Assembly (NCBI GenBank): GCA_036785375.1 | Contig: JAWMAR010000471.1 | Coordinates: forward strand, 558,001 to 622,000 | Direction: 5' to 3' | DNA length: 64,000 nt | Source: Leucoraja ocellata | Lineage: Eukaryota | Shown here: in pieces, positions 549 to 50,300 of the stretch | Layout: every line of letters starts with the position of its first letter | How positions within the stretch are numbered: the first letter of the stretch is position 1 | Program-made: the position numbers and the translations under genes | The notes under the pieces: generated by a model | The model's database searches: none | The model's input: only the letters and a program-made list of their open reading frames with translations | Told to the model about the DNA's origin: nothing

Positions 549-1462
549 TGAACTTGCTGGCAATTGTGATCCTGGCCCGCAGAAATTGTGGTCTCTCCAA
601 ATGCACCACTCGGTACCTGGTGGCCATGGCGACGGCGGACCTCTCTGTGATTGTCTGCGAAGTGATATTAAATCGGATTGCCGACCTTTACTGGATGAAA
701 ACATTCCTCTTCCACAATACTGTGTGCAGGTCCATTATGTTCCTCGCTCCCGCGGCCGTTGCCTGTTCTGTGTGGCTCACGGTTGCTTTCACATTTGATC
801 GCTTTGTGGCCATTTCCACTCAGACTCTGAGAACCAGATACTGCACTGAGAGAACCGCGCTGGTGGTTATAGTGACCATAACTGCGTTCTTCTGTTTACA
901 GAACGTCCCCTGGCCTTTTGCGTACAATTATTATTTCAGGGATCTGCAGGGTATACAGTGGGGCTGCCTAATACGATATCAGTTTTATAGCCTATCCTCG
1001 TGGATAGCATTTTCCTGGACTCAACAGCTGCTAGTCCCAGTCATTCCATTTTGTTTAATTATGCTGATGAACGTGCTCACAGTCAGGCGCATTTTAGTGG
1101 CCAGTCGTGTCCGCAGAAAACTCCGCGATCTCAGTAATGAGGACCCCGAGATCGCAAACCGCAGACGGTCCGTAATTTTACTCCTTGCAATCTCCAGCAG
1201 TTTTATGGTGCTATGGGGCACAAATGTAGCATATTTCGTTTTCTATCGAATTACGAATGCATTTTGGGTCAGGGGGTTGAGGAACCAATTTGCAACATTT
1301 GAACAAACTGGAATTCTGCTACAACTGTTGAACACCTGCACAAACACGCTCATTTACACCGTGACTCAGAGGAGGTTCCGAGAGCATCTGCTCCAGGTAC
1401 TCATGTACCCCTTCACCCTAACTGTAAGTTTAATAAAATCGAGAACACCTGGTGTAAAATAA
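549..1462 (+). CDS. Class A orphan GPCR (GPR139/GPR142-like), copy 1, coding exon 2; exon 1 lies upstream of the window
   Basis: Acceptor cttttctacacccgcAG|tg at 547-548. Open frame VNLLAIVIL...AMATADL...FTFDRFVAI...WGC...LWGTN...NTLIY: hydrophobic TM segments, DRF (DRY-type) and NTLIY (NPxxY-type) motifs, TM3/ECL2 cysteines. Family assignment is from recalled similarity, not a search. Confidence 0.9.
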
Positions 1463-1894
1463 CATTACATTACTAATCCCACCGTGAGACAGTGCAAAAA
1501 CTAGGTAATGGAGGAGTTTTGGCTTAAAACTTTCCGCATCAATTTTCAAAAACATAGCTGAGAAATACAATCTGAACGCGTCCCCTGCACTGGAATGCAC
1601 ATTTGGCCATCAATTTAATATGCGACACGGGCACGTTGTTCAAAGTGCCCAGTGGGGAGGGCGGCCATGTGGAACCGAGTTATATGTTGTACTGGAGCAG
1701 ATCTCCAATGATTCCGGAATTGAGCCTCGCCGTTAACTGTCTCCACTTTCCTTTGAATCCAGCGGCAACGTCTCCAGCACGTAATGAAAACAGACATAGA
1801 GTTATGGTCCTAAACATTGCATGCTCCATTAATCTACAATTCTTTGAGACGTTCCATGGTTACGTATGTAAATGCCCAGTGCACCAATGTGTTT

Positions 1895-1900
1895 AATAAA
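1895..1900 (+). terminator. Putative polyadenylation signal of GPCR copy 1 (also 16763-16768, 32046-32051, 47146-47151 -)
   Basis: AATAAA about 420-430 nt after the stop in all four copies, followed by T/G-rich sequence. Confidence 0.4.
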
Positions 1901-2189
1901 ATTCTTGTTGCAACATTTACATTAATGAGAGTTCCATTCTATTTTTGCTTCTCGAACTGAATGTAATGCCTTGTTGCTTCTTACAGAGGCTTTCTGTTGC
2001 CAGTACAATTAGTAATTCTGCACCAGATGCAGCCAAAGGTAGTGGGTGCCGTTCAAACAAGTTGGCATTACTAACTATATGTTTTAATGGAAGCAGAGTG
2101 TCACACGCTAGTGTCCAGTAAACGGCTGTAAGGTGAGTAAGTTCGCCTGTGTGGTAAGCCAGAGCTTCTGCATCGTTTTGCATTAATCC

Positions 2190-3275
2190 CACCTCCATCT
2201 AGCTTGTCCATTTATAATTGTATATGTTTCTATAAGACCCCCCCCCCCCCCCATCATCTTTCTAAACTCCAATGAATACAAGCCCAGTCTTTTCAATCTT
2301 TCCTCATATGACAGTCCCGCCATCTCAGGGATCAATCTCGTGAACCTACGCTGAAATGCCTCAATCACAAGGATATCCTTCCTCAATTTAGGAGACCAAA
2401 ACTGCACACAATACCCCAGATATGGCCTTACCAGAGCTCTATACAACTGCAGAAGAACCTCTTTACTCCGATACTGAAATCCTCTTGTAATGAAGGCCAA
2501 CATTCCATTAGCTTTCTTCACCGCCTCCTGTACCTGAACGCCAACGTTCAATGACTGGTGTGCAAGGCCGCCCAGGTCTCGATGCACCCCCCCCCCCCCC
2601 CTAACCAAAACCCATTGAGATAATAATCTGCTCCCTTGCTTTTGCCGGCAAAGTGGATAACCTCATATTTATCTATATTATACTGCATTTGCCACGCAAC
2701 TGCCGATTCACTCTACCTGTCCAGATCACCCTGCAACCTCCTAACATCCTCTTCACAGTTCACACTGCCACACAGCTTTGTGTCATCTGCAAACCTGGTA
2801 GTGTTGCTCCTAATTCCCTCTTCCAAATCATTAATATATATGGTGAAAAGTTGCGGCCCCAACACCGAGACTTGAGGCACTTCACTCGCCACTGCCTGCC
2901 ATTCTGAAAATGACCCGTTCACTCCTACTCTTTGCTTCCTGTCTGCCAATCAATTTTCTATCCATGTCAACACCCTATCCCCAATACCATGTGCTCTAAT
3001 TTTAGTCACCAGTCTCCCGTGCGGCACCTTATCAAAGGCTTTCTGAAAGTCTAGATACTCTACATCCAATGGATCCCCTCCAACCATTTAACTTGTCACA
3101 ACCTCAAAAAAATCCCTTTCATAAATCCATGTATACTTGGACTAATCCTTTTGCTATCCAACTGCCCCATTATTACCTCTTTAGTAATTGACTCAGCATC
3201 TTATCCACCACCGAAGTCAGGCTAACTGGTCTGTAATTCCCCATTTTCTCTCTCGCTCCTTTCTTGAAAAGTGGG
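2190..3275 (-). mobile_element. CR1-clade LINE RT fragment
   Basis: [39 protein letters not shown]. Confidence 0.85.
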
Positions 3276-4057
3276 ACAAGGAAGACATAAATAATTTGCC
3301 GGAATAGCAGGGGACCGGCGATCAAATAAGATGGAGGAGCGGAGTGAAATGCATGTTACTCGGGAAATTGAATGGATTAAAGGCCGATAAATCCCCAGGG
3401 CCATATAGGCTGCATCGTAGAGTGCTAAAGGATGTAGCCCCAGAAATAGTGGATGTATTAGTGATAATTTTTCAAAACTCTTCAGATTCTGGAGTTGTTC
3501 CTGAGGATTGGCGGGTAGCTAATGTAACCCCACATTTTAAAAAGGGAGGGAGCGAGAAAACGGGGAATTACAGACAAGTTAGTCTAACATCGGTAGTGGG
3601 GTAAATGCTAGAGTCAATTATTAAAGATGGGATAGCAGCACATTTGGAAAGTGGAGAAATCATTGGACAGTCAGCATGGATTTATGAAAGGTAAATCATG
3701 TCTGACGAATCTTATATAATTTTTCGAGGATGTAACTAGTAGAGTGGATAAGGGAGATCCAGTGAATGTGTCATATCTGGACTTTCAGAAGGCTTTCGAC
3801 AAGGTCCCACATAAGAGATTAGTACGCAAACTTAAAGCACACTGTATTGGGGCTTCAGTATTGATGTGGATAGATAACTTCTTGGCAGACGGGAAGCAAA
3901 CTGTAGGAGTAAACGGGTCCTTTTCAGAATGGCAGGCAGTGACTAGTGAGGTACCGCATGGCTCAGTGCTGAGACCCCAGCTATTGACTATATATATACA
4001 TGTTTTGGACGAGGGAATTAAATGCAACGTCTCCAGGTTTGTGGATCACACGAAGCT

Positions 4058-4094
<37 letters not shown>

Positions 4095-4940
4095 CTGTAT
4101 TACTGTGAGGAGGATGCTAGGACGCTGCAAGGTAACTTGGATAGGCTGGGCGATTGGGCAAATGCATGGCAGATGCAGTATAATGTGGATAAATGTGAGG
4201 TTATCCACTTTAGTGGCAAGAACAGGTAAGTAGACTATTACCTGAATGGTGGTCGATTAGGAAAAGGGGATATGCAACGAGACCTGGGTGTCATGGTACA
4301 CCAGTCATTGAAAGTAGGCATGCAGGTGCAGCAGGCAGTGAAGAAGGCGAATTGTATGTTGGCATTCATAGCAAAAAGATTTTGAGAATAGGAGCAGGGA
4401 GGTTCTACCGCAGCTGTACAGGGCCTAGGTGAGACCACACCTGGAGTATTCCGTACAGTTTTGGTCTCCTATTCTGAGGAAATACATTCTTGCCATAGAG
4501 GGAGTACAGAGAAGGTTCACCACACTGATTCATGGGATGGCAGGACTTCCATATGAAGCACGACTGGATAGACTCGGCTTGTACTCGCTAGAATTTTGAA
4601 GATTGAGGGGGGATCTTATAGAAACTTACAACATCCATAACGGGTTGGGCAGGCTAGATTGTTCCCGATTTTGGGGGAGTCCAGAACAAGGGGTCACAGT
4701 TTAAGGATAAGGGGAACTTCTTTACTCAGAGAGTGGTAGCGGTGTGGAATGAGCTTCCAGTGGAAGTGGTGGAGGCACGTTCGTTGGTATAATTTAAAAA
4801 TAAATTGGATAGGCATATGGATGAGAAGGGAATGGAGGGTTATGGTATGAGTGCAGGCAGGTAGAACTAAGGGAAAATAATTGTTCGGCACGGACTTGTA
4901 GGGCCGGGATGGCCTGTTTCCATGCAGTAATTGTTACATG
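3276..4940 (+). mobile_element. CR1-clade LINE RT fragment, ending in the 3' end of a second CR1 family (about 4710-4940)
   Basis: KSPGP, YLDFQKAFDKVPH, WQMQYNVDKCEV; frameshifted. Confidence 0.85.
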
Positions 4941-5519
4941 GAGAAGGTTCGCGTTTGTGATTGGTCATAGAGCAAATTGGTCTGGCATTTATCTCCCAAG
5001 CCATTACCCCAGGTAAACGCTGAAGTTCTGCAGATGCGAAGTGTTGAGAATGAAAACAAGGGGAAACAGCTTGAAAGGATGATTCTCGGACTCGTGTGCA
5101 TCGTGCGTAGAACTCCGCAGTTGGGAAGACATTGAGAATGATGGAAGAGGCTTCCAATATAAAATGTAACTGATTACGAAAAACAAGGAATCTTTCTGTT
5201 GTTAGTGCCAGCTAAGATATTTATGAGGGTCAGGGTTGATTGGTGACTTTTAACTTGGCGGCAACTTCTGCACAAATCTTTCCATAACATTATTTACAAT
5301 CAAACCCTCCATACTTTGAATGCAACAGCCAAGCCTTCAGCTCTCAATGCCAATAGGTCCACAATTCCGTTCCACAACCGTTCCATGCCCACCACTCTTT
5401 TCTATTTGCGGCCATCTATTTTCCATGTAAGTACCCAGACCACAATACTTGATTCACATCTTGTAAACAGCTTCTCCTACTATAATTTGTGCAATAATAT
5501 GCATATAAACACATACATT

Positions 5520-5815
5520 TCGTTTAGGGATACAGCGCGGAAACAGGCCCCTCGGCTCATAAAGTCCGCGTTGCTCAGCGATTCCCGCACACTAACACAA
5601 TTCTGCGCACTGGAGATATTTTACCATTTTACCGAAACTACAAACTGATACGTCTTTGGAGTATTCGAAGAGACCAGGACAAAACGCTTCTTGGAGAACG
5701 GACAACTCGCCACGCGGATAACGGACAAATTCCGTGCCGGGAACAACCGTGATCAGGATCAAACCCGGATCTCTGGCTGTTTCGGACAGCAACATTACCG
5801 CTGCGGCGCGTGGTC
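5520..5815 (-). mobile_element. tRNA-derived SINE (HE1-like); paralogue at 23320-23612
   Basis: Head GCAGCGGTAATGTTGCTG..GATCCGGGTTTGATCC with A/B-box-like motifs; CR1-like 3' end GGGGCCTGTTTCCGCGCTGTATC. Confidence 0.7.
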
Positions 5816-6397
5816 CCCGTCCCCGTTCTGCAGCGGGCGAAGCAGTCATACCGGGCTGGTCATCCTTTTTAGGCGATAGAGGTCTGGCCAAGCCGGTGAT
5901 ACTCTGTCGGCGGTGGGCTGCCTACTGCTGGGTTTGGCTGCGGCTAAATCAAATTTGGCCGCGCTTTGGACACATTCGAGACACATGCAGGTTTGCCGTT
6001 TAATTGGTCTCTGTAACTGTTCCTGTGTGCAGGAGAGAGGCTGTGTGCGGATACTTGCCGGACGGCGCGGACGTGATGGAGCGAAGGGACAGTTTTCACT
6101 CTGTAAACCAAACTTAAGGAAACTCAAGCAATGTATTATAGTTCACTTTATAATTCGCTCTCTTCAGAAACGGCTCGAATTAGATTGTTTCCCTTTCAAA
6201 GTCAGTATCGTGTAACTGAAATGTAACTAGCAGATGGAAGAGTTGTCACCGGAAGTAAAGATGATGATATGTTTCTGTCTTCCTCTTCACAATTCTTTAT
6301 TCTTCCAAGTACTTTTTAGATTGAAAGAACAAAAGATGAAAAACGAGTTTGTTCTCAACACAAATCCTATTAAATCGCAGACAGAAATATATGCGGG

Positions 6398-9063
6398 GAG
6401 GCTTTGGCATGATAGATTGGAGGGCTCATCTAGGGAGGCTATTTGGGTGGAATTGAGAAGTGGGAAAGTTGTAGCAACACTTATAGGGGTGTATTATAGA
6501 CCGCCAAACGGGGAACGAGAATTGGAAGAGCAAATATGTAAGGAGATAGCAGAGATTAGTAGTAAGCACAAGGTAGTGATTGTGGGAGATTTCAACTTTC
6601 CACACATAGACTGGGAAACACATTCTGTAAATGGGCTGGATGGGTTGGAGTTTGTAAAATGTGTGCAGGATAGTTTTTTGCAGCAACACATAGAGGTACC
6701 TACTAGAGGAGGGGCAGTGCTGGACCTCCTGTTAGGAAATGAGACTGGACAGGTGGCGGAGGTATGCGTTGGGGAGCACTTCGGGTCCAGTGATCACAAT
6801 ACCATTAGTTTCAATATAACTATGGAGAGGGTCAGAACTGGACCTAGGGTTGAGATTTTTGATTGGAGAAAGGCTAACTTTGATGCGATGCGAGATGATT
6901 TAAAAGGAGTGAACTGGGACATTTTGTTTTATGGGAAAGGTGTAGAAGAGAAATGGAGGACATTTAAAGGGGAAATTTTAAGAGTACATAATCTTTATGT
7001 TCCTGTTCGGTTGAAAGGAAACAGTAAAAATTGGAAAGAGCCCTGGTTTTCAAGGGAAATTGGACATCTTGTTCGGAAAAAGAGGGAGATCTACAATAAT
7101 TATAGGCAGCATGAAGTAAATGAGGTGCTTGAGGAGTATAAGGAATGTAAAAAGAATCTTAAGAAAGAAATTAGAAAAGCTAAAAGAAGATATGAAGTTG
7201 CTTTGGCAAGTAAGGTGAAAGTCAATCCAAAGGGTTTCTACAGCTATATTAATAGCAAAAGGATAAGGAGGGACAAAATTGGTCCATTGGAGAGACAGAG
7301 TGGACAGCTATCTGCAGAGCCAAAAGAGATGGGGGAGATATTGAACAATTTTTTTCTTCGGTATTAACCAAGGAGAAGGATATTGAATTATGTGAGGTAA
7401 GGGAAACTAGTAGAGTAGCTATGGATACTATGAGGTTCAAAGTAAAATAAGTACTGACACTTTTGAAAAATATAAAAGTGGATAAGTCTCCAGGTCCTGA
7501 CAGGATATTCCCTAGGACATTGAGGGAAGTTAGTGTAGAAATAGCCGGGGCTATGACAGAAATATTTCAAATGTCATTAGGAACGGGAATAGTCCCCGAG
7601 GATTGGCGTACTGCGCATGTTGTTCCATTGTTTAAAAAGGGTTCTAAGAGTAAACCTAGCAATTATAGACCTGTTAGTTTGACTTCAGTGGTGGGCAAAT
7701 TAATGGAAAAGATACTTAGAGATAATATATATAAGCATCTAGATAAACAGGGTCTGATTAGGAACAGTCAACATGGATTTGTGCCTGGAAGGTCATGTTT
7801 GACTAATCTTCTTGAATTTTTTGAAGAGGTTACTAGGGAAATTGACGAGCGTAAAGCAGTGGATGTTGTCTATATGGACTTTAGTAAGGCCTTTGACAAG
7901 GTTCCTCATGGAAGGTTGGTTAAGAAGGTTCAACTGTTGGGTATAAATGCAGGAATAGCAAGATGGATTCAACAGTGGCTGAATGGGAGAAGCCAGAGGG
8001 TAATGGTGGATGGCTGTTTATCGGGTTGGAGGCAGGTGACTAGCGGGGTGCCTCGGGGATCTGTGTTGGGTCCTTTGTTGTTTGTCATGTACATCAATGA
8101 TCTGGATGAAGGTGTGGTAAATTGGATTAGTAAGTATGCAGATGATACCAAGATAGGGGGTGTTGTGGATAATGAAGAGGATTTCCAAAGTCTACAGAGT
8201 GATTTAGGCCATTTGGAAAAATGGGCTGAAAGATGGCAGATGGAGTTTAATGCTGATAAATGTGAGGTGCTACACCTTGGCAGGACAAATCAAAATAGGA
8301 GGTACATGGTAAATGGTAGGGAATTGAAGAATACAGTTGAACAGAGGGATCTGGGTATAACCGTGCATAGTTCCTTGAAGGTGGAATCTCATATAGATAG
8401 GGTGGTAAAGAAAGCTTTTGGTATGCTAGCCTTTATAAATCAGAGCGTTGAGTATAGAAGCTGGGATGTAATGTTAAAATTGTACAAGGCATTGGTGAGG
8501 CCAAATCTGGAGTATGGTGTACAATTTTGGTCGCCAAATTATAGGAAGGATGTCAACAAAATAGAGAGAGTACAGAGGAGATTTACTAGAATGTTGCCTG
8601 GGTTTCAGCAACTAAGTTACAGAGAAAGGTTGAACAAGTTAGGGCTTTATTCTTTGGAGCGCAGAAGGTTAAGGGGGGACCTGATATAGGTCTTTAAAAT
8701 GATGAGAGGGATAGACATATTTGATGTGGACAAGCTTTTCCCTTTGAGAATAGGGAAGATTCAAACAAGAGGACATGACTTCAGAATTAAGGGACAGAAG
8801 TTTAGGGGTAATATGAGGGGGAACTTCTTTACGCAGAGAGTGGTGGCGGTGTGGAATGAGCTCCCAGTGGAAGTGGTGGAGGCAGGTTCATTGGTATCAT
8901 TTAAAAATAAATTGGATAGGCATATGGATGAGAAGGGAATGGAGGGTTATGGTACGAGTGCAGGCAGGTGGGACTAAGGGGAAAAAAATTGTTCGGCATG
9001 GACTTGTAGGGCCGAGATAGCCTGTTTCCGTGCTGTAATTGTTATATGGTTATATGGTTATAT
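6398..9063 (+). mobile_element. 5'-truncated young CR1-clade LINE (endonuclease C-half + RT), tail (TTATATGG)n
   Basis: GVYYRPP, VGDFNFP, SSDHN, YMDFSKAFDKVPH, YADDTK; one frameshift and two stops; empty site seen in the paralogous unit at 24191-24210. Confidence 0.95.
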
Positions 9064-13951: not shown

Positions 13952-14021
13952 ATGAGTTGGAAGCGGCATTTGGAAGTTGAATATTATTATTATCCAATTC
14001 TGGCAGCAATCGGAGTATCTG
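13952..14021 (+). CDS. GPCR copy 2, coding exon 1 (MSWKRHLEVEYYYYPILAAIGVS)
   Basis: ATG at 13952, 70-nt exon, donor G|gtaggt at 14022. Phase 1 joins exon 2 in frame (G+TG=Val) and completes TM1. Confidence 0.88.
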
Positions 14022-14199: not shown

Positions 14200-14340
14200 A
14201 TAATCGAATCTAGACAAAAATGCTGGAGAATTAGACAGCGGGTGAAGCGGCATCTAGGAAGCGACAGAATAGGTGACGTTTCGGGTCGAGACTGATCAGT
14301 CTGAAGAAGGGTCTCGACCCGAAACGTCACCTATTCCTTT
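14200..14340. mobile_element. Penelope-like pLTR-derived hairpin with minimal hammerhead core, in GPCR intron
   Basis: Perfect 26-bp inverted repeat 14267-14292 / 14311-14336; CTGAAGA-a-GGGTctcgACCC-GAAAC-GTC at 14301-14328. Confidence 0.7.
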
Positions 14341-15399: not shown

Positions 15400-16349
15400 T
15401 GAACTTGCTGGCAATTGTGATCCTGTCCCGCAGAAATTGTGGTCTCTCCAAATGCATCACTCGATACCTGGTGGCCATGGCGACGGCGGACCTCTCGGTG
15501 ATTGTCTGCGAAGTGATATTAAATCAGATTGCCGACCTATACTGGATGAAAACATTCCTCTTCCACAATACTGTGTGCAGGTCCATTATGTTCCTCGCTC
15601 CCGCGGCCGTTGCCTGTTCTGTGTGGCTCACGGTTGCTTTCACATTTGATCGCTTTGTGGCCATTTCCACTCAGGCTCTGAGAACCAGATACTGCACTGA
15701 GAGAACCGCGCTGGTGGTTATAGTGACCCTAACTGCGTTCTTCTGTTTACAGAACGTCCCCTGGCCTTTTGCGTACAATTATTATTTCAGGGATCAGCAG
15801 GGTATACAGTGGGGCTGCCTAATACGATATCAGTTTTATAGCCTATCCTGGTGGCTAGCTTTTTCCTGGACTCAACAGCTGCTAGTCCCAGTCATTCCAT
15901 TTTGTTTGATTATGCTGATGAACGTGCTCACAGTCAGACGCATTTTAGTGGCCAGTCGTGTCCGCAGAAATCTCCGCGATCTCAGTAGTGAGGACCCCGA
16001 GATCGCAAACCGCAGACGGTCCGTAATTGTACTCCTTGCAATCTCCAGCAGTTTTATGCTACTCTGGGGCACAAATGTGGTATATTTCGTTTTCTATCGA
16101 ATTACGAATGCATTTATGCCCAGGGGGTTCAAGAACCCATATGCAAAATTTGATCAAACAGGAATTCTGCTACAACTGTTGAACACCTGCACAAACACGC
16201 TCATTTACACCGTGACACAGAAGAGGTTCAGACAGCATCTGCTCCAGGTACTCATGTACCCCTTCACCCTAACTGTAAGTTTAATAAAATCGAGAAATCT
16301 GGTGTTAAATAACATTACAAATCCCTTTGTGAGTAAGTGCAAAAACTAG
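15400..16349 (+). CDS. GPCR copy 2, coding exon 2 (spliced product 339 aa, frameshift-extended C-terminus)
   Basis: Acceptor AG at 15398-15399; intact 7TM frame; about 92% amino-acid identity to copy 1 by manual comparison. Confidence 0.9.
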
Positions 16350-19870: not shown

Positions 19871-19879
19871 ATGTTACTA

Positions 19880-29237: not shown

Positions 29238-29307
29238 ATGAGTTGGAAGCGGCACTTGGAAGTGGAATATTATTATTATCCAATTCTGGCAGCAATCGGA
29301 GTACCCG
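29238..29307 (+). CDS. GPCR copy 3, coding exon 1 (MSWKRHLEVEYYYYPILAAIGVP)
   Basis: ATG at 29238, donor G|gtaggt at 29308, 70 nt, phase 1. Confidence 0.88.
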
Positions 29308-30699: not shown

Positions 30700-31613
30700 T
30701 GAACTTGCTGGCAATTGTGATCCTGTCGCGCAGAAATTGTGGTCTCTCCAAATGCACCACTCGGTACCTGGTGGCCATGGCGACTGTGGACCTCTCGGTG
30801 ATCGTCTGCGAAGTGATATTACATCGGATTGCCGACCTTTACTGGGGGCACTCATTCCTCTTCCACAATACTGTGTGCAGGTCCATTATGTTCCTCGCTC
30901 CCGCGGCCGTTGCCTGTTCTGTTTGGCTCGCGGTCGCTTTCACATTTGATCGCTTTGTGGCCATTTCCACTCAGAATCTGAGAACCAGATACTGCACTGA
31001 GAGAACCGCGCTGGTGGTTACAGTGACCCTAACTGCGTTCTTCTGTTTACTGAACGTCCCCTGGCCGTTTGCGTACATTTATTATTTCAGGGATCGTCAG
31101 GGTACATTGTGGGGTTGCCAAATACTATATCACTTCTACAGCCTATCCTCGTGGATAGCATTTTCTTGGACTCAACAGCTGCTAGTCCCAGTCATTCCAT
31201 TTTGTTTGATTATGCTGATGAACGTACTCACAGTCAGACGCATTTTATTGGCCAGTCGTGTCCGCAGAAAACTCCGCGATCTCAGTAGTGAGGACCCCGA
31301 GATCGCAAACCGCAGACTGTCCGTAATTTTACTCCTTGCAGTCTCCAGCAGTTTTATGCTGCTCTGGGGCACAAACGTGGCATATTTCGTTTTCTATCGA
31401 ATTACGATTGCATTTAAGTACAGGGGGTTGAAGAACCCATTTGCAACATTTGAACAAACTGGAATTCTGCTACAATTGTTGAACACCAGCACAAACACGC
31501 TCATTTACACCGTGACCCAGAGGAGGTTCAGAGAGCATTTGCTCCAGGTACTCATGTACCCCTTCACCCTAACTGTACGTTTAATAAAATCGAGAAATCC
31601 TAGTGTAAAATAA
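30700..31613 (+). CDS. GPCR copy 3, coding exon 2 (spliced product 327 aa)
   Basis: Acceptor AG at 30698-30699; intact 7TM frame with DRF and NTLIY. Confidence 0.9.
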
Positions 31614-35481: not shown

Positions 35482-35696
35482 ACATGTGTTACTTTTTAAG
35501 CTAGGGGGCTCGACTGTGGCAAGTAAATTAACAGGCACAATCCTCGGCAACAAGCAGGATCGTTTCGTTGAACACCTCCGCTCAATTCGCCTCCAACGTG
35601 TCCAATCCCTTAATAATCTATTATGTTTAAAAATATACCCTCTCATCCTACTAAATTCCAGTATATACACGCCCAGCCACTCCATTATATTCACAT

Positions 35697-38005: not shown

Positions 38006-38990
38006 ATGCCCCTGTCCCACTTAGGAATTAGTTTACCTTCCGGTGGGTCTTCAGTGTAAGGGAGCAACTCTCCAGCTACGACACTATGCCGCCTAATTTA
38101 TTCCTACACTGCTCAAACTATCCTTTTTGCGAATTCCCTCGAGGGAGTATAGTAGAGCTATGATCTAGTGAAGGTGTTGTCATGTTGCTGTTGTGGAGGA
38201 ATCCCCAGACTATTGCGATGCAGAGAAGTAATTCAGTACCGGCTCATGGAGCAAAAACAGTAATTACTGCATTAAGGTATTTGCACATTTGTGCAGTCAC
38301 CCATTGGGAAAGGCGCCAGGCGTATTCAAAGTGTTTAATTTTACTTACCTCACGGGCATATCCATCAGGGTATTTATTTTAGCAGTTGCTGTAGCTATGC
38401 ATCTGGTGTCTAGTGATATATCCAGCGACACAGATCTGGATTACTCAGCAAGGCCCAATGGTGAACTACCCATCTGCATTACTGCATCCGCCATTTGCGG
38501 TAACTAGTTTGGTTTATTGACTTCCTATTCTTCCCGCGTCCCGGACGATTTTTCTGCAATAAGTGAAGGCCAATGACCACCTGAAATTAGAAAGTCTGTC
38601 AGGGTGTTGGTGAAGTGGAATTGGTTAACGTAATTGTGACAATTCCCGGCCAGCCAATCCTCCATCCAGTGACACCCTAGTTTTTCTGATAAAAAACAGA
38701 ACCTTCTACAGTTATTAACCAGGTTCTCCAGAACTGAGAGAGAATGAAAATGAACACACGTTCCAGACCTCTGGTCACATGTTCTATCCCGCTGTCATAA
38801 GAGCTCTTGTAATTCTCTGCAGCTAGCGGCTAATGTTATGGAAACGGATTCCGGAGAAGCAGCTCGCAGTTGGAAACAATAAAACCACCAGGACACCTGC
38901 ACACAATGAAAGCAAACCGACAACTGAGAGATAACAGGAAAGCAGGCACATCCAACCGCATCAGCGGAGCAGAGAGCAAGAGAAAGGCAA

Positions 38991-39028
38991 TGTTTTTGTA
39001 AGGGGCTTAACTTGTTTCCATCACTGTG
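38991..39028 (-). promoter_or_regulatory. Recombination signal sequence (23-type; 22-bp spacer) of V segment 1
   Basis: CACAGTG + atggaaacaagttaagcccctt (22 nt) + ACAAAAACA. Confidence 0.93.
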
Positions 39029-39335
39029 CGCCACAGTGCGCAGTAGTAGACTGCAGAGTCGCTGAGATCCAGCCCTGAGATACTCAAGCTGGTGAACTTA
39101 GTCGCGGTATTGAGCTCAATAGAGAAACGAGTATCAGCGTGTTGGGACTTATCTTCATTGTTGCCGGTGTCTCTCGACATAGTAAACTCGGGCTGCATGC
39201 CTGGATATTGTCGGTACCAGGATAAAGCATATGCTGTCCATGTGGTATCATAGTTACAGGTTAAAGTCACCGCTTCTCCTTTTGTCTTCGTCACCGAGGG
39301 CAGTGGCTGTGTGACAGATTCTCCGTGAATGGTGA
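39029..39335 (-). CDS. TCR alpha/delta-type V segment 1, V exon (apparently functional)
   Basis: Acceptor ttttacAG; ESVTQP...VTLTCNY...WYRQYPG...RFS...SLSISGLDLSDSAVYYCALW with both Cys and the Trp of an IgV domain; YYCAL ending typical of TRAV/TRDV; immediately followed by an RSS. Confidence 0.9.
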
Positions 39336-39453
39336 CTGTAAAATAAATATATTTAGATAGTAACAGATACCTGAGTGCCATAAAATTGCACTTCTCAAGC
39401 CAACATCTCACTGAGTAGGGCGAGGGGAACTGAAAATATTGATCCAGAATTAC

Positions 39454-39499
39454 CTGTCAGAAACGCTCCCCACACGACACAGATGCCGAGGAAACGCAT
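39454..39499 (-). CDS. TCR alpha/delta-type V segment 1, leader exon (MRFLGICVVWGAFLT)
   Basis: 46-nt hydrophobic leader, donor G|gtaatt, 118-nt intron, phase 1: the canonical antigen-receptor L-V layout. Confidence 0.9.
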
Positions 39500-40122
39500 T
39501 TTGCCCGTTCACTATGTACTGGCTGAGTTCGAAACTTGAAGAGACAAAAACTGGATCGTGTCTGCTGGTCTCCGGATGTTCGCTGTCACTGCCATGTGCC
39601 CCCAGTGATGGAGTCAGAGATGTGGGTGGGCAGCGGGGTCTCTGCCAATTAAAATACACGTAGCCGGAATCCAGCTTCCCCCCGAGAGTATTCGCATCCG
39701 CTTGAATAAACCGTGATTGAGGAAGGCATATTTGTTCTTGTAACCGGTGGTGAAGGTGCGAAGCCTGACATTGTTAAGCGAAATAATAATAGGTGCATAT
39801 TCACAAATGGAATAGATCGGGTAAACTCACAGAGTCTCTTGGCCAGATTAGGTGGATCGAGAAACAGAGAACATAGATTCAAAGTGAGTGTGGAGTAGAT
39901 TTAATAGAGACCCGAAGGGTAACTTTTTCATACAAAGGGGGCGGCGCTTGGAACGAGCTGCCGGAGGCAGTAGTTAAGGCAGGCACAATCGCAGAGTTTA
40001 TGAAGAGCGTTGACATATACATGGATAGAACGGATGTTGAGGATATGGACGAAATGCATGCAGGTAGGAATAGTGTAGATGGAACATGTTGGCTGGTGTT
40101 GGCAATTTGGGCCGAAGGGTGT

Positions 40123-40657: not shown

Positions 40658-40841
40658 AAGGGTGTGTTTCCACGCAGTAAGACTCTATGATGCCACGATT
40701 CTAAAAAGAAACACCACAGTATTAACGTCATCCGTCCAAAGGCTACGGGCAGATGTGCAGTCGCTTCGGCCGTGTGGAGAAAATGGGAATTATTACGATG
40801 TTTTGATGTATACATTGAGAAATGCACGTGATTTCTATACG

Positions 40842-41595
40842 AGTCAAGTCAAGTCAAGTCAAGTTTATTCGTCACATACACGTACGAGATGTCAGTGAAA
40901 TGAAAAGTGCTGCGGCGTGTGATGTCCATGTCATATCCTCAGAGATGTGGACTCCCAGATATTTAAAAGAGTTCACCCTATCCACAGTATCCCCATTTAT
41001 GCTCAATGGCGTGTAGGTCCTCGGATGATGTGCCCTCCTAAAGTCCATGATCAGCTATTTAGTTTTTTGATGTTCAATCGGAGGCTGTTGTCCTGACCCC
41101 AGAGTGCTAGATCAGCCACCTCCTCTCGGTCGGCATTCTCATCGTTGTCTGAGATCCGGCCCACTACCACAGTGTCATCAGCAAACTTGATTATTGAGTT
41201 GGAGCTGAACCTAGCCACACAGTCATGTGTGTACAGGGAGTACAATAGGGGGCTGAGGACGCAACCCTGGGGCGATCCTGTGCTCAGGGTGAGGGACTTC
41301 GATGTATTTCCTCCCATCTTGACTACCTGGGGATTGGCGGTGAGAAAGTACAGGGCCCAGGCACACAGTGGGGTGTTGAGCCCCAATTCTATTAGCTTCC
41401 CGGCCAGTCTATGAACAGCATCCTCACGTAGCCCCACTTCTGGCTGTCCAGGTGGGAGAGAGCGGTGTGCAAAACCTGGGAGACCGCATCGTCCGTGGAT
41501 CTGTTCGGACGGTATGCGAACTGTAACAGGTCTATGTTGCGAGGGAGGAAGGCGCAGATGTGTTTCTTCACCAGCCTCTCGAAGCATTTCATGAA
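40842..41595 (-). mobile_element. Rex1/Babar LINE fragment, (ACTTG)n tail
   Basis: [42 protein letters not shown]. Confidence 0.9.
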
Positions 41596-41734
41596 TACCG
41601 AGGAAAATAAGTAAATAAGTGAAGTAAATTACAAGCAAAGCCAGAAGGATGTGCAAGGAGCCATTTTCAATGAATGTGTTCAGTTCCACTCCCCCACATC
41701 TGCCATGTTTTGGCATATGAAATTAATTCCTGAG

Positions 41735-42017
41735 GACCTCACCCCGCCGAGTCCACGCCGACCATCGATGACCGGATCACTTTCGTTCCGTGTTATTCCA
41801 CCTTTCCATCTATGCCTTACACACTTGGTGCATGTTTACAGAGGCCAATTAACCTAAAACAAACACACGTATTGGGGATACGGGAGGAAATCAGAGCACC
41901 TGGACGATACCTACACGGTCACAGCGAGACGGGAAAACTACACTCAGACATTACCCGAGTACAGGATTGATCCCGGGTGTCTGAAGCTTTGAGGCAGCAG
42001 CAGCTGCGCCACTGTGC
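41735..42017 (-). mobile_element. HE1-like SINE; paralogue at 56972-57245 (+)
   Basis: Head CAGTGGCGCAGCTGCTGCTGCCTC..CCCGGGATCAATCCTG. Confidence 0.7.
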
Positions 42018-42126
42018 CGACAAAACGTGTGATTTGTTTTTAAAAGCGTGCAGCTGGGTGATTGTTGAAATTTAACCACAGCTAGCCGGCAAAATAGGTT
42101 TGTAATTTCCATGAGTTGCAGCAGTG

Positions 42127-42198
42127 TATCGAGTGGCCTAGTGATCTGCATTCTGCGCACCGACCGTTGCTGCCTGAATTCGGTTCGTGGTCAGGCAG
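42127..42198 (+). pseudogene. Decayed tRNA-Glu-derived sequence
   Basis: 72 nt colinear with vertebrate tRNA-Glu(CTC): GTGGCCTAGTGA..ATTCTGCGC..ACCG..GCC..TTCGGTTC..GGTCAGG; acceptor stem and anticodon degraded. Confidence 0.65.
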
Positions 42199-42964
42199 TA
42201 TGGCGGCATCTTTCTGTCTCCAGCGGCAACATTATTAGACCGCGCATCGTTCACTCTGTGTACTTTCAGCGTCGCCTCAACCACGTGAACAGTCAGCAGC
42301 TCACAAACATTTAAAATAATATACTTATGCAAAATACATAAACATTATTGCTACCAACGGCTAACATTGCCATAACCCCGACTGGTTCATGCAGCCAGGG
42401 GTCTCAGATTCAAATTAATATTGAGATTCACATTCAAAATATATCTCCAAAATCGAAAAAAATATATACCAACAATGGCCCATAAATAATATTTTCGAAT
42501 ATGCTAACTATACAACGTGTTGTCCATCATGGAAACAAACCACTAGAGATTGGATGATAATTGAAATGCACTCTCGCTCACCTGCTCGCGGAGTGGCGTG
42601 GATATCAGTGCAGTTGGGGAGGAGCAGCCATAAAGTGTGAAATCGCCACATTTGACTGGGTCTTTACATGGAAACAGTTCCGCCTTCACTGACCTCGACT
42701 ATGGGAAACACAACTGGGATTATTGTGAATTGTGGGAACAGTCATAGTGCGTCAATTCTTTGGATTTCGAAATATATAGTTTATTCGAGAAATAAATATG
42801 TACAATACATGATCCTTACAAAACCCCCATCCGACATTCTCGGAGGCTAAACATACATTCAATACTGTTTACACAAATTACACAATTTTACCTCCCACCT
42901 AAGGGATCACAAATAACATTAGCAAATGTGCAGACGACACAAAGCTGGGTGGCAGTGTGAACAG

Positions 42965-42965
42965 T

Positions 42966-43043
<78 letters not shown>

Positions 43044-43045
43044 GT
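42965..43045. repeat. (TG)n microsatellite at the inversion junction
   Basis: About 40 TG units, seen directly. Confidence 0.95.
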
Positions 43046-43214
43046 GGTGGGTCGTGTATGATTTTTGGTCGGTAGATGCAGCTCACGCTTCGGTCGATCG
43101 AGCTCGAGGCTTTCCAGGCGATTAACCAAAACATCTGGCAACCTCATGGAAACCTTGGGTTGCGGGCAATGTCACCAGAGTTTTCCGTTCAAGTTTCCTA
43201 AGAGGGACAGAGGC

Positions 43215-43410
43215 ATTACACTGCCGGAGACCCGGGTTAGAACCTGAGTACCGTGTTGTCAGTATCGATGTTGCAAGTTCTGACGATTGGACAAGATGGC
43301 GGCGCATCGCGGCAGCGGCCTCTGCTGTACGTCTGTCTTTCCCTTCTTCTTGTCTCGTTAGGTGTTTGTTTTGGTTTCGTTTTATATACTTTTTAGCTGT
43401 GTATATGTGT

Positions 43411-43441
<31 letters not shown>

Positions 43442-44265
43442 GTCGTGGAGGGGGGGGGGGGGGTTAAATCTCTTCCCTGTACGAATATTCGACCTTTTCC
43501 CTGTCAAGTGTCCGTTGTCGTTGGGGCCCAACATTGTGTAGCCGGCGGCCTCCAACCGGAATCGACCTGGGTCTCGAGTCGCGGAGCCTGCGGACTAGGA
43601 CTTCGGAGCTTCGGAGTCTCCGTCTGCAGGCTCTGTGGACGGTAACAGCGGGAGCTCGCAGGTCCCTGGTAGGAGACCTCTTTTTGGAGCTCCCGCAACG
43701 GTAACTTCTCCCGACCGAATCGAGAGGATTAAATCGACCCGTAGCAGGTCCTTATATCGCCCGGCGCGGTTTCAACGGACGTTGGACTTACCGTCAACCG
43801 CTGAGGGCTCTAACATAAAAAGCCTCGATCAGCTCGATGCAGCAGTTTGACTGCTTGACTGTGGGAGAAGAATAAAGAACCGAGAACAGCGAAGAGAAAA
43901 TACTTTTTCCTTCCATCACAGTGAGGGGGTGTTTGGAGAATCACTGTGATGGATGTTTGTGTGGAATTGTGTTAATTTTGTGTATTGTTTTTTGTTGTTG
44001 GTATGACTGCAGGACCGTAATTTCGTTTGAGCCTGTGTTTCAATGACAATAAACGGCATGCTGATTCTGACTCTGATTCCGATGACTGCCTGGGTTTTCT
44101 CCGGGTGCTCCGGTTTCCTCACAGACTCGAAATACGTACAGGCATATAGTTTATTTTTAATGTCTGTAAATTGTAACTATTCTCCAGCTTGTAGTAGAGT
44201 GCTGCTGTCTGGGGTGATCGTTGGTAAGCGCTGATTGTGTGGGACGAAGGGCCTGTGTCCACAGC
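43215..44265 (+). mobile_element. HE1-like SINE interrupted by a GC-rich retroposon (43289-44080); paralogue at 60035-61085
   Basis: Inner element starts CAAGATGGCGGCG (YY1-like motif) and ends AATAAA..(ATTCTG)n. Confidence 0.65.
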
Positions 44266-44499
44266 GGATCTCTGATTTCTTGAGCCTATGTTCCTTGGGC
44301 GCAGGAGGCGGAGTGTACGGGATCATTAGCGGATCGGACAACGTGAATCACGCGAGAATCACAGTGGGAAACTTTGATTCTGCTGTGTGGGGATATTTTA
44401 TGTTGGACTCTATCGTGTGTTGTGTTCTTTATTTTATTGTATGGTTATATGGTGACCACACATTTCACTGTAGCAACTGGTACATGTGACAAATAAATG

Positions 44500-45095
44500 C
44501 ATCTCGTATCGTGTCCTTTGCCCAGAGTTGGAGAATCAGCAACCAGAGGAATTAGGTTAAAGGTGAGAGGGGAAATATTTAACAGGAACGGGAGGGAAAC
44601 TTTTGCACTTGAGAAGGTGATGGGTATCACCTGGGGTCATTGTACATCACTCACTGAAAGTAAGCATTCAGGTACAGCAGGCAGTGAAGAAAGCTAATTG
44701 CACGTTGAGCTTCATAACAAGCGCAGTTGAGTATAGGAGCAAAGAGGTCCTTCTGCAGTTGTACAGGGCCCTAGTGAGACAACACCAGGAGTAATGTGTG
44801 CAGTTTTGGTCTCCAGATTTGACGAACGGCATTCTTGCTATTGAAGGAGTGCACCGTGGGTTGGGAGTGCACCGTGGGTTCACCTGGTTAATTCCCGGGA
44901 TGGCGGGACTATCATATCTGGATACAATGGAGCGGCGGGGCTTGTATACAATGGAATTTAGTAGGACGAGAGGGGATCTTTTTGAAACATAAAATATTAT
45001 TAAGGGATTGGAGACGTCGGAGGCAGGAACCATGTCCCCGATGTTGAGAGAGTCAAGACCTAGGGACCGCAGTTTAAGAATAGGTTGTAGGTTAT
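44500..45095 (+). mobile_element. CR1 fragments; paralogue at 61340-61895
   Basis: QFWSPDL, ILAIEGVHR, LQLYRALVRP. Confidence 0.75.
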
Positions 45096-47581
45096 TTAGC
45101 AAGCGGGAGATCATGCTGTTTTAGGCGAATTGAGCGGAGATGTTCAACGAAACGATCCTGCACGTTGCCGAGGATCGTGCCAGTTAATTTACTTGCCACA
45201 GTCGAGCCCCCTAGCTTAAAAAGTAACACATGTGTTTGTGCAATAAATTAGTTTATGGGTCTGGAAGCGGAGAGAGAAGGTCCTGTGATAGGACACAGAT
45301 GGAAATTAGCTGATTAGCTTATTTTCAATAGACAATAGGTGCAGGAGTAGGCCATTCGGCCCTCCTAGCCAACACAGCCATTCTATGTGATCATCCCCAA
45401 TCACTACCCCGTTCCTGCCTTCTCCTTATATCCCCTGACTCCGCTATCTTTAAGAGCCCTATCTAGCTCGCTTTTGACATTATCCAGAGAACCGGTCTCC
45501 ACCACCGTCTGAGGCAGAGAATACCACAGACTCATTACTCTCTGTGTGAAAATTTGTTGCCGCATCTCCATCTAAATGGCTTACCCCTTATTCTTAAACA
45601 GTGGCCCTGGTTCTGGACTCCCCCAACATCGGGAACATGTTTCCTGCCTCGAGCGTGTCCAAACCCTCAATGACATTATATGTTTCAATAAAATGCCCTC
45701 TCAACCTTCTAATTTCCAGTATATACAAGCCCAGTCGCTCCATTATTTCAACATATGTCAGTCCAGCCATACTGGTTAGAACCGCCCGTTGGGAAAATTA
45801 AAGTTCTGACAGTCTACCCTATCGACACCTGTCGTAAACTAACTAACGTAAACTAACTAAACTTGCACGCTGTACAAATTGGTGACCAGCAGCAAAGCCA
45901 TTAGTGAATGTCTTTGCCAATTCGGAAAGATGGACACATTTACTAAGTACAGCGTGTTTTAGAGTCGGAGTTGCTCATTTACCGGAATGGTGGCTGGATT
46001 AGCGGTGCAGGGAGAGATTGGTCATATTTGGATTCTTTCCCTCGGGAATGTCGGAGATTGCAGGAAGATCTGGTTGAGGTATGTAAAGTTTCGAGAGGGT
46101 CGAAAGGGTCGCTCCCCCAACGCACCCGTTCCCTACCCGTGGCCACCACAGGAGGCGTGGTCCTCCAACTCAAGCCGTTCCTGAACGTAAGTGAAGCTGA
46201 TCACTGCTAGCCGAGCCATCGTGACGTCATCAGTTGAAGCTAGTAGTTTTATATTCAATCTTTTGATTTTTATTAAAACTTTAATCAGTAATGTCGAGAA
46301 ATAAAGCATAAAATGGTCAGCGAAGGTGCTCGCTGCTGGCTGGAGGGGATAAGTGTGGATCAGGATATGTAAAAATCTTATGAAAGTTGGCCTTTTTAAT
46401 GCTTTAATCGCGAATAACGTTAAATATAGGATGAAATTTTCAGGGAAGCTGATCACTGCTAGCCGAGCCATTGCGACGTCATCAGTTGCAGCTGGTCGTT
46501 TTAAATTCAAAGTATTTTGATGATTTTAAACTTCTTACTTACTTTGAATCAGAAATTTGTCAAGAAATAAGGCATAAAATGTCCAGTGAAGGTATGTATT
46601 CACGGCCTCGAGGGGATAAACGTCAATCAGAATATGTAAAAATGTAATCGTTACCGCTTCGGGAGCGGAGGATTTGGGGAGAGAGTACTCAACTCAAATT
46701 TGGAGCTATACAAATCTCAGCCGCCATCGGTGGTGAAAATAAATTAATGGATTTCTCACATTATCTTGCCCTGCAAGAGGAGATAAATCCGACTCTTGCC
46801 CACTCCCTCGAATCTCAAATAGGCAGAGCTCCAGCGCCGGCGCTGCATCAAAGGAGGTGGGACATTAATGCAAATCGATTTTCAGCATATCTTTACCACA
46901 CAGGCGAACTTACTCACTTTACCGCCCTCTACTGGACACTCGCTGTTACACACTGCTTGCATTAACAAAATAATTTGTAATGCCAACGTATGAATAACAC
47001 CCACTACCTTTGGCTGCATCTGGTGCAGAGTTACTAATTGTACTGAAAACCGTAAGGCTCTGTAAGAAGCAACGTGGCATTACATTCAGTGCGAGAAACA
47101 AATATAAAATGGAACTCTCATTAACATAACTGTTGCAGCAAGAATTTTATTAAACACATTGGCGCACTGGGCATTTACATACGTAAACATGGAACGTCTC
47201 AAATAATTATAGAGTAATGGAGCATGCAATGTTTAGGACCATAACTCTATGTCTGTTTTCATTGCGTGTTGGAGAAGTTACCGCTGGATTCAAAGGAAGG
47301 TGGAAACAGTTAACGGCGAGGCTCAATTCCTGAATCATTGGAGGTCTGTTCCAATACAACATAGCACTCGGTTCCACATGGCCGCCCTTCCCACTGGGCT
47401 CTTTGAACAATGCGCCCGTGTCGCATGTTAAATAGATGGCGAGATGTGCATTCCAGTGCAGGGGACGCGTTCACATTGTATTTCTAAACTATTTTTTGAA
47501 AATTGAGGCGGACACTTTTCAGAGAAAACCCTTCATTACCTAATTTTTTCACTCACTCACGGAGGGATTAGTATTGTAATG

Positions 47582-50300
47582 TTAATTTACATATGGTGTT
47601 CTCGATTTTATTAAGCTTACAGTTAGGGTGAAGGGGTACATGAGTACCTGGAGCAGATGCTCTCTGAACCTCCTCTGGGTCACGGTGTAAATGAGCGTGT
47701 TTGTGCAGGTGTTCAACAGTTGTAGCAGAATTCCAGTTTGTTCAAATGTTGGAAATGGGTTCTTCAACCCCCTGGACATAAATGCATTCGTAATTCGATA
47801 TAAAACGAAATATACCACGTTTGTGCCCCAGAGCAGCATAAAACTGCTGGAGATTGCAAGGAGTAAAATTACGGACCGTCTGCGGTTTGCGATCTCGGGG
47901 TCCTCATTACTGAGATCGCGGAGTTTCCTGCGGACACGACTGGCCACTAAAATGCGTCTGACAGTGAGCACGTTCATTAGCATAATCAAGCAAAATGGAA
48001 TGACTGGGACTAGCAGCTGTTGAGTCCAGGAAAATGCTATCCACGAGGATAGGCTATAAAAGTGATATCTTATTAGGCAGCCCCACTGTATACCCTGCTG
48101 ATCCCTGACATAATAATTGTACGCAAACGGCCAGGGGACGCTCAGTAAACAGAATAACGCAGTTAGGGTCACTATAACCACCAGCGCGGTTCTCTCGGTG
48201 CAGTATCTGGTTCTCAGATTCTGAGTGGAAATGGCCACAAAGCGATCAAATGTGAAAGCGACCGTGAGCCAAACAGAACAGGCAACGGCCGCGGGAGCGA
48301 GGAACATAATGGACCTGCACACAGTATTGTGGACGAGGAATGAGTGCGCCCAGTAAAGGTCAGCAATCCGTTGTAATATCACTTCGCAGACGATCACCGA
48401 GAGGTCCACAGTCGCCATGGCCACCAGGTACCGAGTGGTGCATTTGGAGAGACCACAATTTCTGCTGGACAGGATCACAATCGCCTACAAGTTCACTGGA
48501 AAAGAGAAAACTGTCGTTACATGTAAGGGAAACACGATGCTCATTTGGAAGCGGGGTCAAACTTGGGTACGCTTGGCTTATTTGTTCTAAAAAAACTGGC
48601 CCACATACAAACATGGGTGCGTGCTAAGGAGCTGTGCGGATTACGTAGCAGCGGTCTACGAAGGCAGCGTGAGCTGTCTCACAGCCACACTTGTTTCACC
48701 GCAGACTGCATATTGCAGCAACATGTCCGCATCAGACGCCATCGTCCTGGACCTAAACCCTTCCTGGGAACAGCCGGGCAGCAAGGAGTCGAAAGTCAGA
48801 TTCCCATTCCCAACACTACTCCCATCCAACCCATTGATAAGCTCCCGAGCCTAGCGATCAGCACACCAGCTTCTAATGTTCAAATGAACGTACCTTAATC
48901 AGAGAGTAGTAGTTATAACACCCCTTCCACAATAATTCTCTACAACGGTGCCGCATAAAGACGTCTCATCCGGTTCCGGGTTCTTCCTCCCATGCACTCA
49001 CGATCCCGCGGCCAAATGCGGCTGTGACTGCTCCCACAAGCTCCCAGATGATGACAATCTCTATGTCTGTATCAACGAGGCCAAGGAGCAAGTTATCGAT
49101 ATCAGGGAATGCGGGTGGATCACCGGTCAGCAACAACGGTGCTGAAGTGGAAGTGATTGAGGACGTCAAGTTCCTCGTAGTTAATATTACCAACGATGTT
49201 TGTTGGACGACCACATCGAAGGGACAGCCAGCGGCAGACCAACACCTTTACGGAGAAGTCTGAGGAACTTTGACCTGCCTCTGATGACTCAAACATGCTG
49301 CGGCAGATTAGCATAGAACGCATACTGTTGGTGTATCACAGCTTGTTGTGGGGATATCTATGCCCTATAAAGAGTAAATTGCGCATGGTTCTGGAAGATG
49401 CCGGGTCGTTATCAACAAATAGACTCCGCACTGTTGACTGCGTTTCCACTTCACAATCCCTTGGAAACGGAGACATGTCTCACCCCGCTCATTCCTTCTA
49501 CTCCCTGCACCCGTCGGGCAGAAGATACAGAAGGCTTATAGCTCGCACCACCAGACTCCAGAACTGCTTCTTCCCCTCTGTTGTCAGGCTTCTGAGCCGC
49601 TCTTCCATATGCGAGGGTATTGCCGTTTCACCTCTATCCCCTTGCGGACATTGGGCTTTGTGGATGTGATACGCTGCAGTGCGCTCCCAAACTTGTACTA
49701 CGTTCTGCACTCCGATTTCCCCTATTACACTACCTGTTACTGAGATTGAATTGTTTGTACTTGTATTATTTGATCTGATTGGATTTCTTGCAAACCAAAG
49801 CTTTATGCAGCTCCCGGAGAGACATGACTACAATGCACCTAAACCTGAATCTGAAGAGAATTAACCTGTGCCAGATCCAATGAACTACCAACGATCAAGT
49901 ATATTAAGAAAGGAATAGGTGACGTGTCGGTTCGAGACCCTTCTTCAGACTGATCACTCGACCCGAAACGTCACCTATTCCTTCGCTTCATAGATGCTGC
50001 TTCACTCGCCGAGGTTCTCCAACATTTTTGTCCGGCTTTGATTTCTTCAGCAAATTCAGTTCGTTCTGATGCAGGTATATTAGCATTTTATGGTTAATAC
50101 CGCCCTAACCTGAATGATACAGTCTAGCATTCCCGTGTTTCGCACACTATTATCACTTTACCTTTAACATTCTCTTTATCAACAGAGCATCCCACGTGTC
50201 AGTCCCACTTACTGCGTTCTCTTGACCTACCGGGTATTGCGATTGCTGCTAGAATTGGATAATAATAATATTCAACTGTCAAGTGCCGCTTCAAACTCAT
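47582..50300 (-). pseudogene. GPCR copy 4 (exon 1 50300-50231, exon 2 48495-47582) with premature TAG at codon 27
   Basis: Exon 1 MSLKRHLTVEYYYYPILAAIAIP with gtaggt donor; acceptor ttttccAG. Exon 2 reads V-N-L-TAG (48487-48485) where paralogues have CTG; the rest of the frame is intact. Confidence 0.8.
49910..50035. mobile_element. Penelope-like hairpin, copy 4 intron
   Basis: Paralogue; GAAA core mutated to GACA on the gene's sense strand. Confidence 0.65.

Follow-up and report, generated by a model that had tools for sequence, protein, structure and literature searches.

Do the receptor genes of this skate locus differ in their extracellular loops because selection has driven them apart, or because the loops are simply free to change? 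The locus is a stretch of 64,000 nucleotides from Leucoraja ocellata (contig JAWMAR010000471.1, positions 558,001 to 622,000; hereafter the window), in which a first-pass annotation had described G protein-coupled receptor (GPCR) paralogues as hypervariable in the predicted extracellular loops (ECLs) and had put this down to diversifying selection on ligand or pathogen recognition. The window contains exactly four tandem two-exon class A GPCR genes, copies 1 to 3 on the plus strand and copy 4 on the minus strand, and tblastn found no fifth copy in it. It is a tandem array of young duplicates, one of them inverted, from a class A family that has expanded in chondrichthyans. Among the four copies, amino acid replacements are concentrated in ECL1, ECL3, and the hairpin of ECL2, where they have accumulated at or above the neutral rate, and the helical core, the intracellular loops (ICLs), and helix 8 (H8) are under purifying selection. 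That the loops have been driven above the neutral rate is only suggested by the data.

Loops were delimited with DSSP on an AlphaFold model of exon 2 that was built with 89 homologues (pLDDT 86.4, pTM 0.83). The model comprises the end of transmembrane helix 1 (TM1), TM2 to TM7, and H8, and its best Foldseek matches were class A receptors. In copy 1 (plus strand), and with residues numbered from exon 2, ECL1 spans residues 48 to 55 (positions 692 to 715), ECL2 is a beta-hairpin of residues 125 to 148 (positions 923 to 994), and ECL3 spans residues 235 to 247 (positions 1253 to 1291). The outward side was fixed by the invariant Cys59/Cys139 pair and the DRF motif; in the model, Cys139 of ECL2 would pair with Cys59, at position 3.25. 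When the variable sites were mapped on this structure, replacements were concentrated on the extracellular side, in line with the first-pass annotation. The 45 loop codons make up 15% of the 298 in the alignment and hold 19 of the 50 codons that vary by replacement (binomial P = 6.5e-5), whereas codons with synonymous variation only showed no loop enrichment (3 of 31). A Fisher test of the two kinds of codon, loops versus the rest, gave an odds ratio of 5.7 (P = 0.005). The proportions of nonsynonymous and synonymous differences (pN and pS) in the ECLs were 0.130 and 0.109, and the ratio of nonsynonymous to synonymous rates (omega) was 0.39 in the outer halves of the TM helices, 0.24 in the inner halves, and 0.55 in the ICLs and H8.

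The residue counts given in the first-pass annotation stood up well to recounting. Its figure of about 23 exon 2 residue differences between copies 1 and 2 came out as 23 of 298 aligned codons, with 37 nucleotides changed. The 13-codon patch assigned to ECL3, which corresponds to residues 239 to 251 and overlaps the DSSP-defined loop, does carry 10 nucleotide changes in 8 codons between copy 1 (1265 to 1303) and copy 2 (16116 to 16154), all of them replacements and none synonymous. The patch reads WVRGLRNQFATFE in copy 1 and MPRGFKNPYAKFD in copy 2, and the readings reported for copy 3 (31416 to 31454) and copy 4 (47741 to 47779, minus strand), KYRGLKNPFATFE and MSRGLKNPFPTFE, were also found. 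ECL1 reads WMKT, WMKT, WGHS, and WAHS in copies 1 to 4, as had been noted, with residues 49 to 51 being MKT, MKT, GHS, and AHS. ECL2 of copy 3 indeed departs from that of copy 1 at 7 of 19 residues (126 to 144), namely at 126, 132, 135, 136, 140, 142, and 144. The statement that TM3, TM5, and TM7 are almost invariant needs one amendment; the summed pN values of 0.007, 0.021, and 0.036 agree with it, but the first turn of TM7 (residues 248 to 251) is variable. In contrast, summed pN was 0.200 in ECL1 and 0.176 in ECL3, and neither loop had any synonymous change (pS of 0 in ECL1).

Rates were estimated for the four window copies with our own codon likelihood of the Goldman-Yang type. With the partition held fixed and one synonymous rate for both classes of codon, omega was 1.96 in the loops versus 0.39 elsewhere. 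Equality of the two was rejected (P = 4e-9), as was a loop omega of 1 (one-sided P = 0.006, chi-square), and in a parametric bootstrap under a loop omega of 1 the observed statistic was reached in 4 of 300 simulations. Over three topologies and two codon-frequency models, the loop omega ranged from 1.8 to 1.96, with P values from 0.003 to 0.013. ECL1 and ECL3 together gave an omega of 2.55 (P = 0.001) and ECL3 by itself 2.7 (P = 0.004), or 3.65 without copy 4; the partition results were unchanged when copy 4 was left out. The comparison of site models M7 and M8, a check proposed along with the original claim, gave a 2dlnL of 9.48 (P = 0.009) in this likelihood, and M1a versus M2a gave 9.47 (P = 0.009), with about 4.8% of sites at an omega near 6.9. 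Only four sites had a posterior above 0.8, and all were in loops: 49 in ECL1 (0.97), 132 in ECL2 (0.95), and 239 and 240 in ECL3 (0.96 and 0.999).

The same sites vary beyond the window. The exon 2 protein has 881 database relatives at an E value of at most 1e-10, a large and tandemly duplicating family; among the 120 relatives listed, every one of the 119 named entries comes from a shark, ray, skate, or chimaera, and nearly all are called "probable GPR139" by NCBI. In the tree, the four copies group with P0002 of Leucoraja erinacea and with P0001 (support 1.0), and two Amblyraja proteins are sister to this group (support 0.98), a placement that makes the clade of the four copies young and skate specific. 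P0001 and P0002, the two closest public gene models, bring in residues not seen in the window copies at these positions. Among the six sequences, 12 of the 13 sites with at least three states are on the extracellular side, and codons 239 and 240 show 4 and 5 different residues. The test for loop enrichment in six other subclades (at least 80% identity) gave P values of 0.003 to 0.006 for three of them, 0.056 for a fourth, and 0.15 and 0.17 for the last two. Over 90 family members, mean entropy was highest in ECL3 (2.69 bits), followed by ECL2 (2.08) and ECL1 (1.92), and was 1.05 to 1.35 in TM2 to TM7. The P0001 gene model starts in sequence that is intron in the window, an unspliced read-through, and the P0002 model lacks TM1 and has an unrelated C terminus. 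Both models look imperfect, and public counts for the family may therefore be unreliable. No description of this chondrichthyan expansion was found in a literature search whose coverage excluded subscription journals and their supplements.

Despite the database names, the skate genes are not orthologues of GPR139, and the first-pass annotation was right to set them apart from a conserved neuronal receptor. Human GPR139 is the best sequence match in the PDB, yet it scores just 28.9 bits (E = 8e-6). In Foldseek it ranks seventh, and CCK1R, GALR1, and GPR139 score alike at about 21% identity (about 21 to 22% for GPR139). Across vertebrates, GPR139 is a single, strongly conserved gene for an orphan receptor. 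Like the skate genes it is interrupted by an intron in TM1, and the receptor is responsive to aromatic amino acids as well as to some peptides. The skate genes share with it, and with GPR142, the class A fold and a short N terminus, but there are four of them in 64 kb and hundreds of tandem copies in the family. The sequence alignment pairs A and P of the skate proteins with E and F of GPR139 at positions 3.32 and 3.33, and the skate genes also differ from it in having Thr for Pro at 7.50 and DRF for DRY. The peptide receptors CCK1R and GALR1 were the best Foldseek matches (TM-score 0.69 to 0.73) and resemble the skate proteins in the modeled beta-hairpin of ECL2 and its conserved Cys pair to TM3; they differ in sequence (about 20 to 21% identity) and in their N terminus, which is much shorter in the skate.

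Matches to Pfam 7tm_1 in all four copies (55.6 to 70.1 bits against a gathering cut-off of 30.5), together with the helical bundle of the model, identify the genes as class A, or rhodopsin-like, GPCRs. The landmarks of that class are N1.50, D2.50, the D/E-R-Y motif, the pair of C3.25 with an ECL2 Cys, W6.48, and NPxxY. In the four copies N1, D30, DRF at 83 to 85, C59, C139, and W222 are invariant, the NPxxY motif reads NTLIY, and Y3.51 is Phe. The proteins appear equipped to signal as class A receptors. Exons 1 and 2 were analyzed separately, and the protein searches and the fold model use exon 2, which runs from the second half of TM1 to the stop codon. Exon 1 encodes a very short N terminus and the start of TM1. 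For copy 1, exon 2 lies at 549 to 1462 (plus strand; open frame, 7tm_1 E value of 1.3e-18), and exon 1 must fall beyond the left edge of the window. The other first exons were located by tblastn with the Amblyraja N terminus and by reading the sequence. They lie at 13952 to 14021 (copy 2, plus), 29238 to 29307 (copy 3, plus), and 50231 to 50300 (copy 4, minus), and the corresponding second exons at 15400 to 16349, 30700 to 31613, and 47582 to 48495. Exon 2 of copies 2 and 3 is intact, with an open frame and a 7tm_1 match. Each first exon has 70 bases, that is, 23 codons and one base, and is followed by the donor GTAGGT. The intron is of phase 1 and about 1.4 to 1.7 kb long (exon 1 is about 1.4 kb upstream in copies 2 and 3 and about 1.7 kb in copy 4), and the acceptor, CCCGCAG followed by TG AAC, is common to all four copies. 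The first complete codon of exon 2 encodes the conserved Asn of TM1, and from the length of exon 1 this Asn is protein residue 25, which leaves a tail of about 10 residues or fewer before TM1. The N terminus of about 10 residues in the first-pass annotation is thus reasonable. The upstream "MHHVSLTCNYSFLFSTPA" in its mechanical open reading frames (ORFs) is intron read-through and is corrected here.

At the outer end of TM1, exon 1 of copies 2, 3, and 4 encodes a conserved acidic stretch and then four tyrosines (EVEYYYY), also present in the Amblyraja homologues, which could be a tyrosine sulfation-like site. In copy 2 the stop codon at which copies 1, 3, and 4 end is gone (16296 to 16349), and the frame continues for 9 more residues to the next in-frame stop. 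Three codons into exon 2, copy 4 carries an in-frame TAG (48487 to 48485), which had been missed before, and its polypyrimidine tract has lost 8 bases; these lesions make it a probable young pseudogene. A hand count from the codon table found synonymous and replacement changes about equal in number on the branch leading to copy 4, which argues that its stop codon is recent.

The duplication unit measures several kilobases. Self-comparison gave long flank matches of 90 to 92% identity among copies 1 to 3 and of 85 to 89% to copy 4, and these identities together with the stop codon of copy 4 describe a tandem birth-and-death array with a pseudogene. Noncoding divergence adjoining exon 2 was 0.073 between copies 1 and 2 and 0.085 to 0.15 for the other pairs; synonymous divergence between copies was 0.059 to 0.116, and gene-wide omega was 0.40 to 0.64. 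Over 2.2 kb there are 51 parsimony-informative sites, 43 of which support the tree ((1,2),(3,4)).

With moderate confidence, we propose that selection after duplication tunes the entrance for the ligand through loop residues, over a core that stays constrained. After each duplication, selection would favor change at a small set of residues that ring the pocket entrance, mainly exon 2 residues 49 to 51, 132, 239 to 240, and 243 to 251. New copies would then differ in the ligand that they admit, and coupling to the G protein would be unchanged. The 30 most variable sites of the family include 2.61, 2.64, 2.65, 3.29, 3.32, 3.33, 5.43, 6.51, 6.58, and 7.39, in a numbering for which we take the usual landmark rules to hold, and of these only 2.61 differs within the set of four window copies. 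The deeper pocket positions among them (3.29, 3.32, 3.33, 5.43, 6.51, and 7.39) are thus fixed in the young copies and variable across the wider family, which suggests that older splits would alter the pocket and young ones its entrance. The four copies alone hint at such tuning and cannot prove it.

A number of observations weigh against this proposal. Only four sequences were analyzed, one of them with a stop codon, and the loop partition was picked after the first-pass annotation had already seen the pattern. ECL2 alone gave an omega of 1.29, which is not significant. When codons 239 and 240 were dropped, the loop omega fell to 1.53 (P = 0.068) and M2a was no better than M1a (P = 0.43). Dropping the 13 codons at which at least one pair of copies differs by more than one base lowered it to 1.08, a value that still exceeds that for the rest of the protein (P = 0.004). 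Counting nucleotides gave 30 changes (P = 0.004), but counting one event per codon change gave 24 against 17.4 expected under neutrality (P = 0.078), so that multinucleotide mutations could produce the loop excess. Because the signal fades in these ways, an omega above 1 hinges on counting multinucleotide changes as independent hits, and that part of the claim is fragile. Of the diversifying selection originally put forward, the clustering of replacements on the extracellular side and the contrast of 1.96 with 0.39 stand, and the excess over neutrality, which fades without codons 239 and 240, does not stand as firmly. A search of sequencing runs likewise lent the proposal no help: three runs of undeclared kind matched 0.31 to 0.34 of the words and no run was recorded as RNA, the single run guessed to be RNA matched only the 45-base repeat at 14296 to 14340, and no joint of exon 1 to exon 2 was present among the 15 of 31 read joints listed, short contigs covering intron and exon alike, as DNA would. 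The run search is no evidence on expression either way.

The loops could be merely unconstrained, with an omega of about 1 and a few multinucleotide events in ECL1 and ECL3 inflating the replacements, and no adaptive diversification need then have occurred. The falls in omega just described, the event count, and the ECL2 value all speak for this, and within a run of 5 adjacent bases spanning codons 239 and 240, copy 1 is changed at 4, which resembles one complex event. However, taking out the fastest codons lowers omega by construction. Some loop positions are conserved, with W137, C139, and P246 kept family-wide, and only 19 of the 45 loop codons vary in residue. With so many loop codons unchanged, an average omega at or above 1 implies higher values at the variable subset. 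The 4 and 5 residues at codons 239 and 240 in six paralogues need several independent events, and the absence of synonymous change from ECL1 and ECL3 is contrary to a local mutation hot spot. We regard unconstrained loops as possible, if somewhat unlikely.

Short gene conversion tracts offer another route to the same pattern. Divergent paralogues elsewhere could have donated the ECL3 differences, and perhaps those of ECL1, in which case the dN/dS of a single tree would mislead and selection may or may not retain the mosaics. In a large, tandem family donors would be at hand, and two further results count against the tuning proposal on this score. First, F243, Y247, and K249 of copy 2 and W239 and V240 of copy 1 are the states of the Amblyraja protein P0003. 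Among 89 other family members, 4 have Y247 and 7 have K249. The states shared with P0003 could have come by conversion from paralogues outside the sample, or they could be ancestral and have been kept. Second, exon 2 is a mosaic of two histories, the 5' half placing copies 1 and 2 close together on short terminal branches and the 3' half being star-like. When each half was given its own branch lengths, omega was 2.59 for ECL3 (P = 0.009) and 1.77 for ECL1 and ECL2 together (P = 0.055). Conversion among the four copies themselves was considered and rejected: 43 of the 51 informative sites fit one tree, and a permutation test for long shared tracts was significant only at intron positions 54 to 162, where copy 4 is divergent. 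The 150-base window around the ECL3 patch (1250 to 1399) contains none of the 51 informative sites; its variable sites are single-copy or multistate, which indicates that each copy changed on its own branch. These private changes do not fit an import, and neither do the unchanged codons of the tract, which are identical at the third position in all copies, unlike what a distant donor would leave. Conversion from outside the window is an unlikely source of the loop differences.

That the whole array consists of decaying, nonfunctional duplicates, passively amplified with neighboring T cell receptor (TCR) V segments, is highly improbable and was rejected, since despite the premature stop in copy 4, the fairly high gene-wide omega, the transcripts not found in the run search, and the V segments within the same duplicated region, copies 1 to 3 retain open frames, splice sites, and class A landmarks, the stop in copy 4 is recent by the near equality of synonymous and replacement changes on its branch, and decay would not spare the helices (omega of 0.24 in inner TM halves, 0.39 outside the loops) and strike the loops.

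If selection does tune the ligand entrance, the candidate specificity residues for swapping between copies are exon 2 residues 41, 49 to 51, 132, 239 to 240, and 243 to 251. By analogy with known receptor families, these receptors may form a ligand-diversified repertoire of a sensory or chemoattractant type. A broader version is more tentative, and we offer it as a doubtful but real possibility: an undescribed repertoire, either chemosensory and offsetting small sets of odorant receptors (ORs) and TAARs or of the leukocyte chemoattractant type, would have spread alongside the TCR V segments, with positive selection acting repeatedly on the entrance to the binding pocket. Sharks and rays have very small OR and TAAR sets. 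A family of hundreds of orphan class A receptors whose young duplicates alter the ligand entrance over a constrained core would be a strong candidate for the recognition system, sensory or immune, that is missing.

Among known systems, the MRGPR, TAS2R, and vomeronasal FPR families are lineage-specific class A repertoires and have fast-evolving extracellular domains over a constrained core. The skate array resembles them in its tandem birth-and-death organization with a pseudogene and in extracellular replacements at or above the neutral rate; it differs in having no homology to them beyond class A, and the skate statistics rest on four copies. ORs and TAARs are likewise large tandem families in which pocket-lining positions of TM3, TM5, TM6, and TM7 vary between subfamilies. 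The skate copies, however, return only 7tm_1 in a Pfam scan, have two coding exons, and change in the loops rather than in the pocket when young.

Several other elements share the window with the receptor genes. On the minus strand (38991 to 39499), in the interval that separates GPCR copies 3 and 4, is an intact V gene segment with the appearance of a TCR alpha/delta-type V. It has a leader exon and a V-set exon that ends in YYCALWR (Pfam V-set, E = 3.8e-15), after which come CACAGTG, 22 bases of spacer, and ACAAAAACA. A second V segment on the plus strand (58189 to 58693) is about 89% identical to the first and belongs to an inverted duplication (38164 to 40120 versus 59512 to 57547). Several single-base deletions break its frame and its recombination signal is kept; it is probably a pseudogene. 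In three runs the words of the 45-base element in the intron of copy 2 (14296 to 14340) were counted millions of times; the element probably belongs to a short interspersed repeat of very high abundance. A peptide resembling a splice junction, VPVNLLATV, at 35512 to 35538, 45177 to 45203, and 61977 to 62003 was set aside as a chance likeness, the three being copies of one repeat with no similarity to exon DNA. Retroelement ORFs lie between the genes at 3720 to 4226, 6231 to 8686, 41054 to 41722, and 52430 to 54098; RVT_1 was confirmed only in that at 41054 to 41722, and the others were recognized by their translation.

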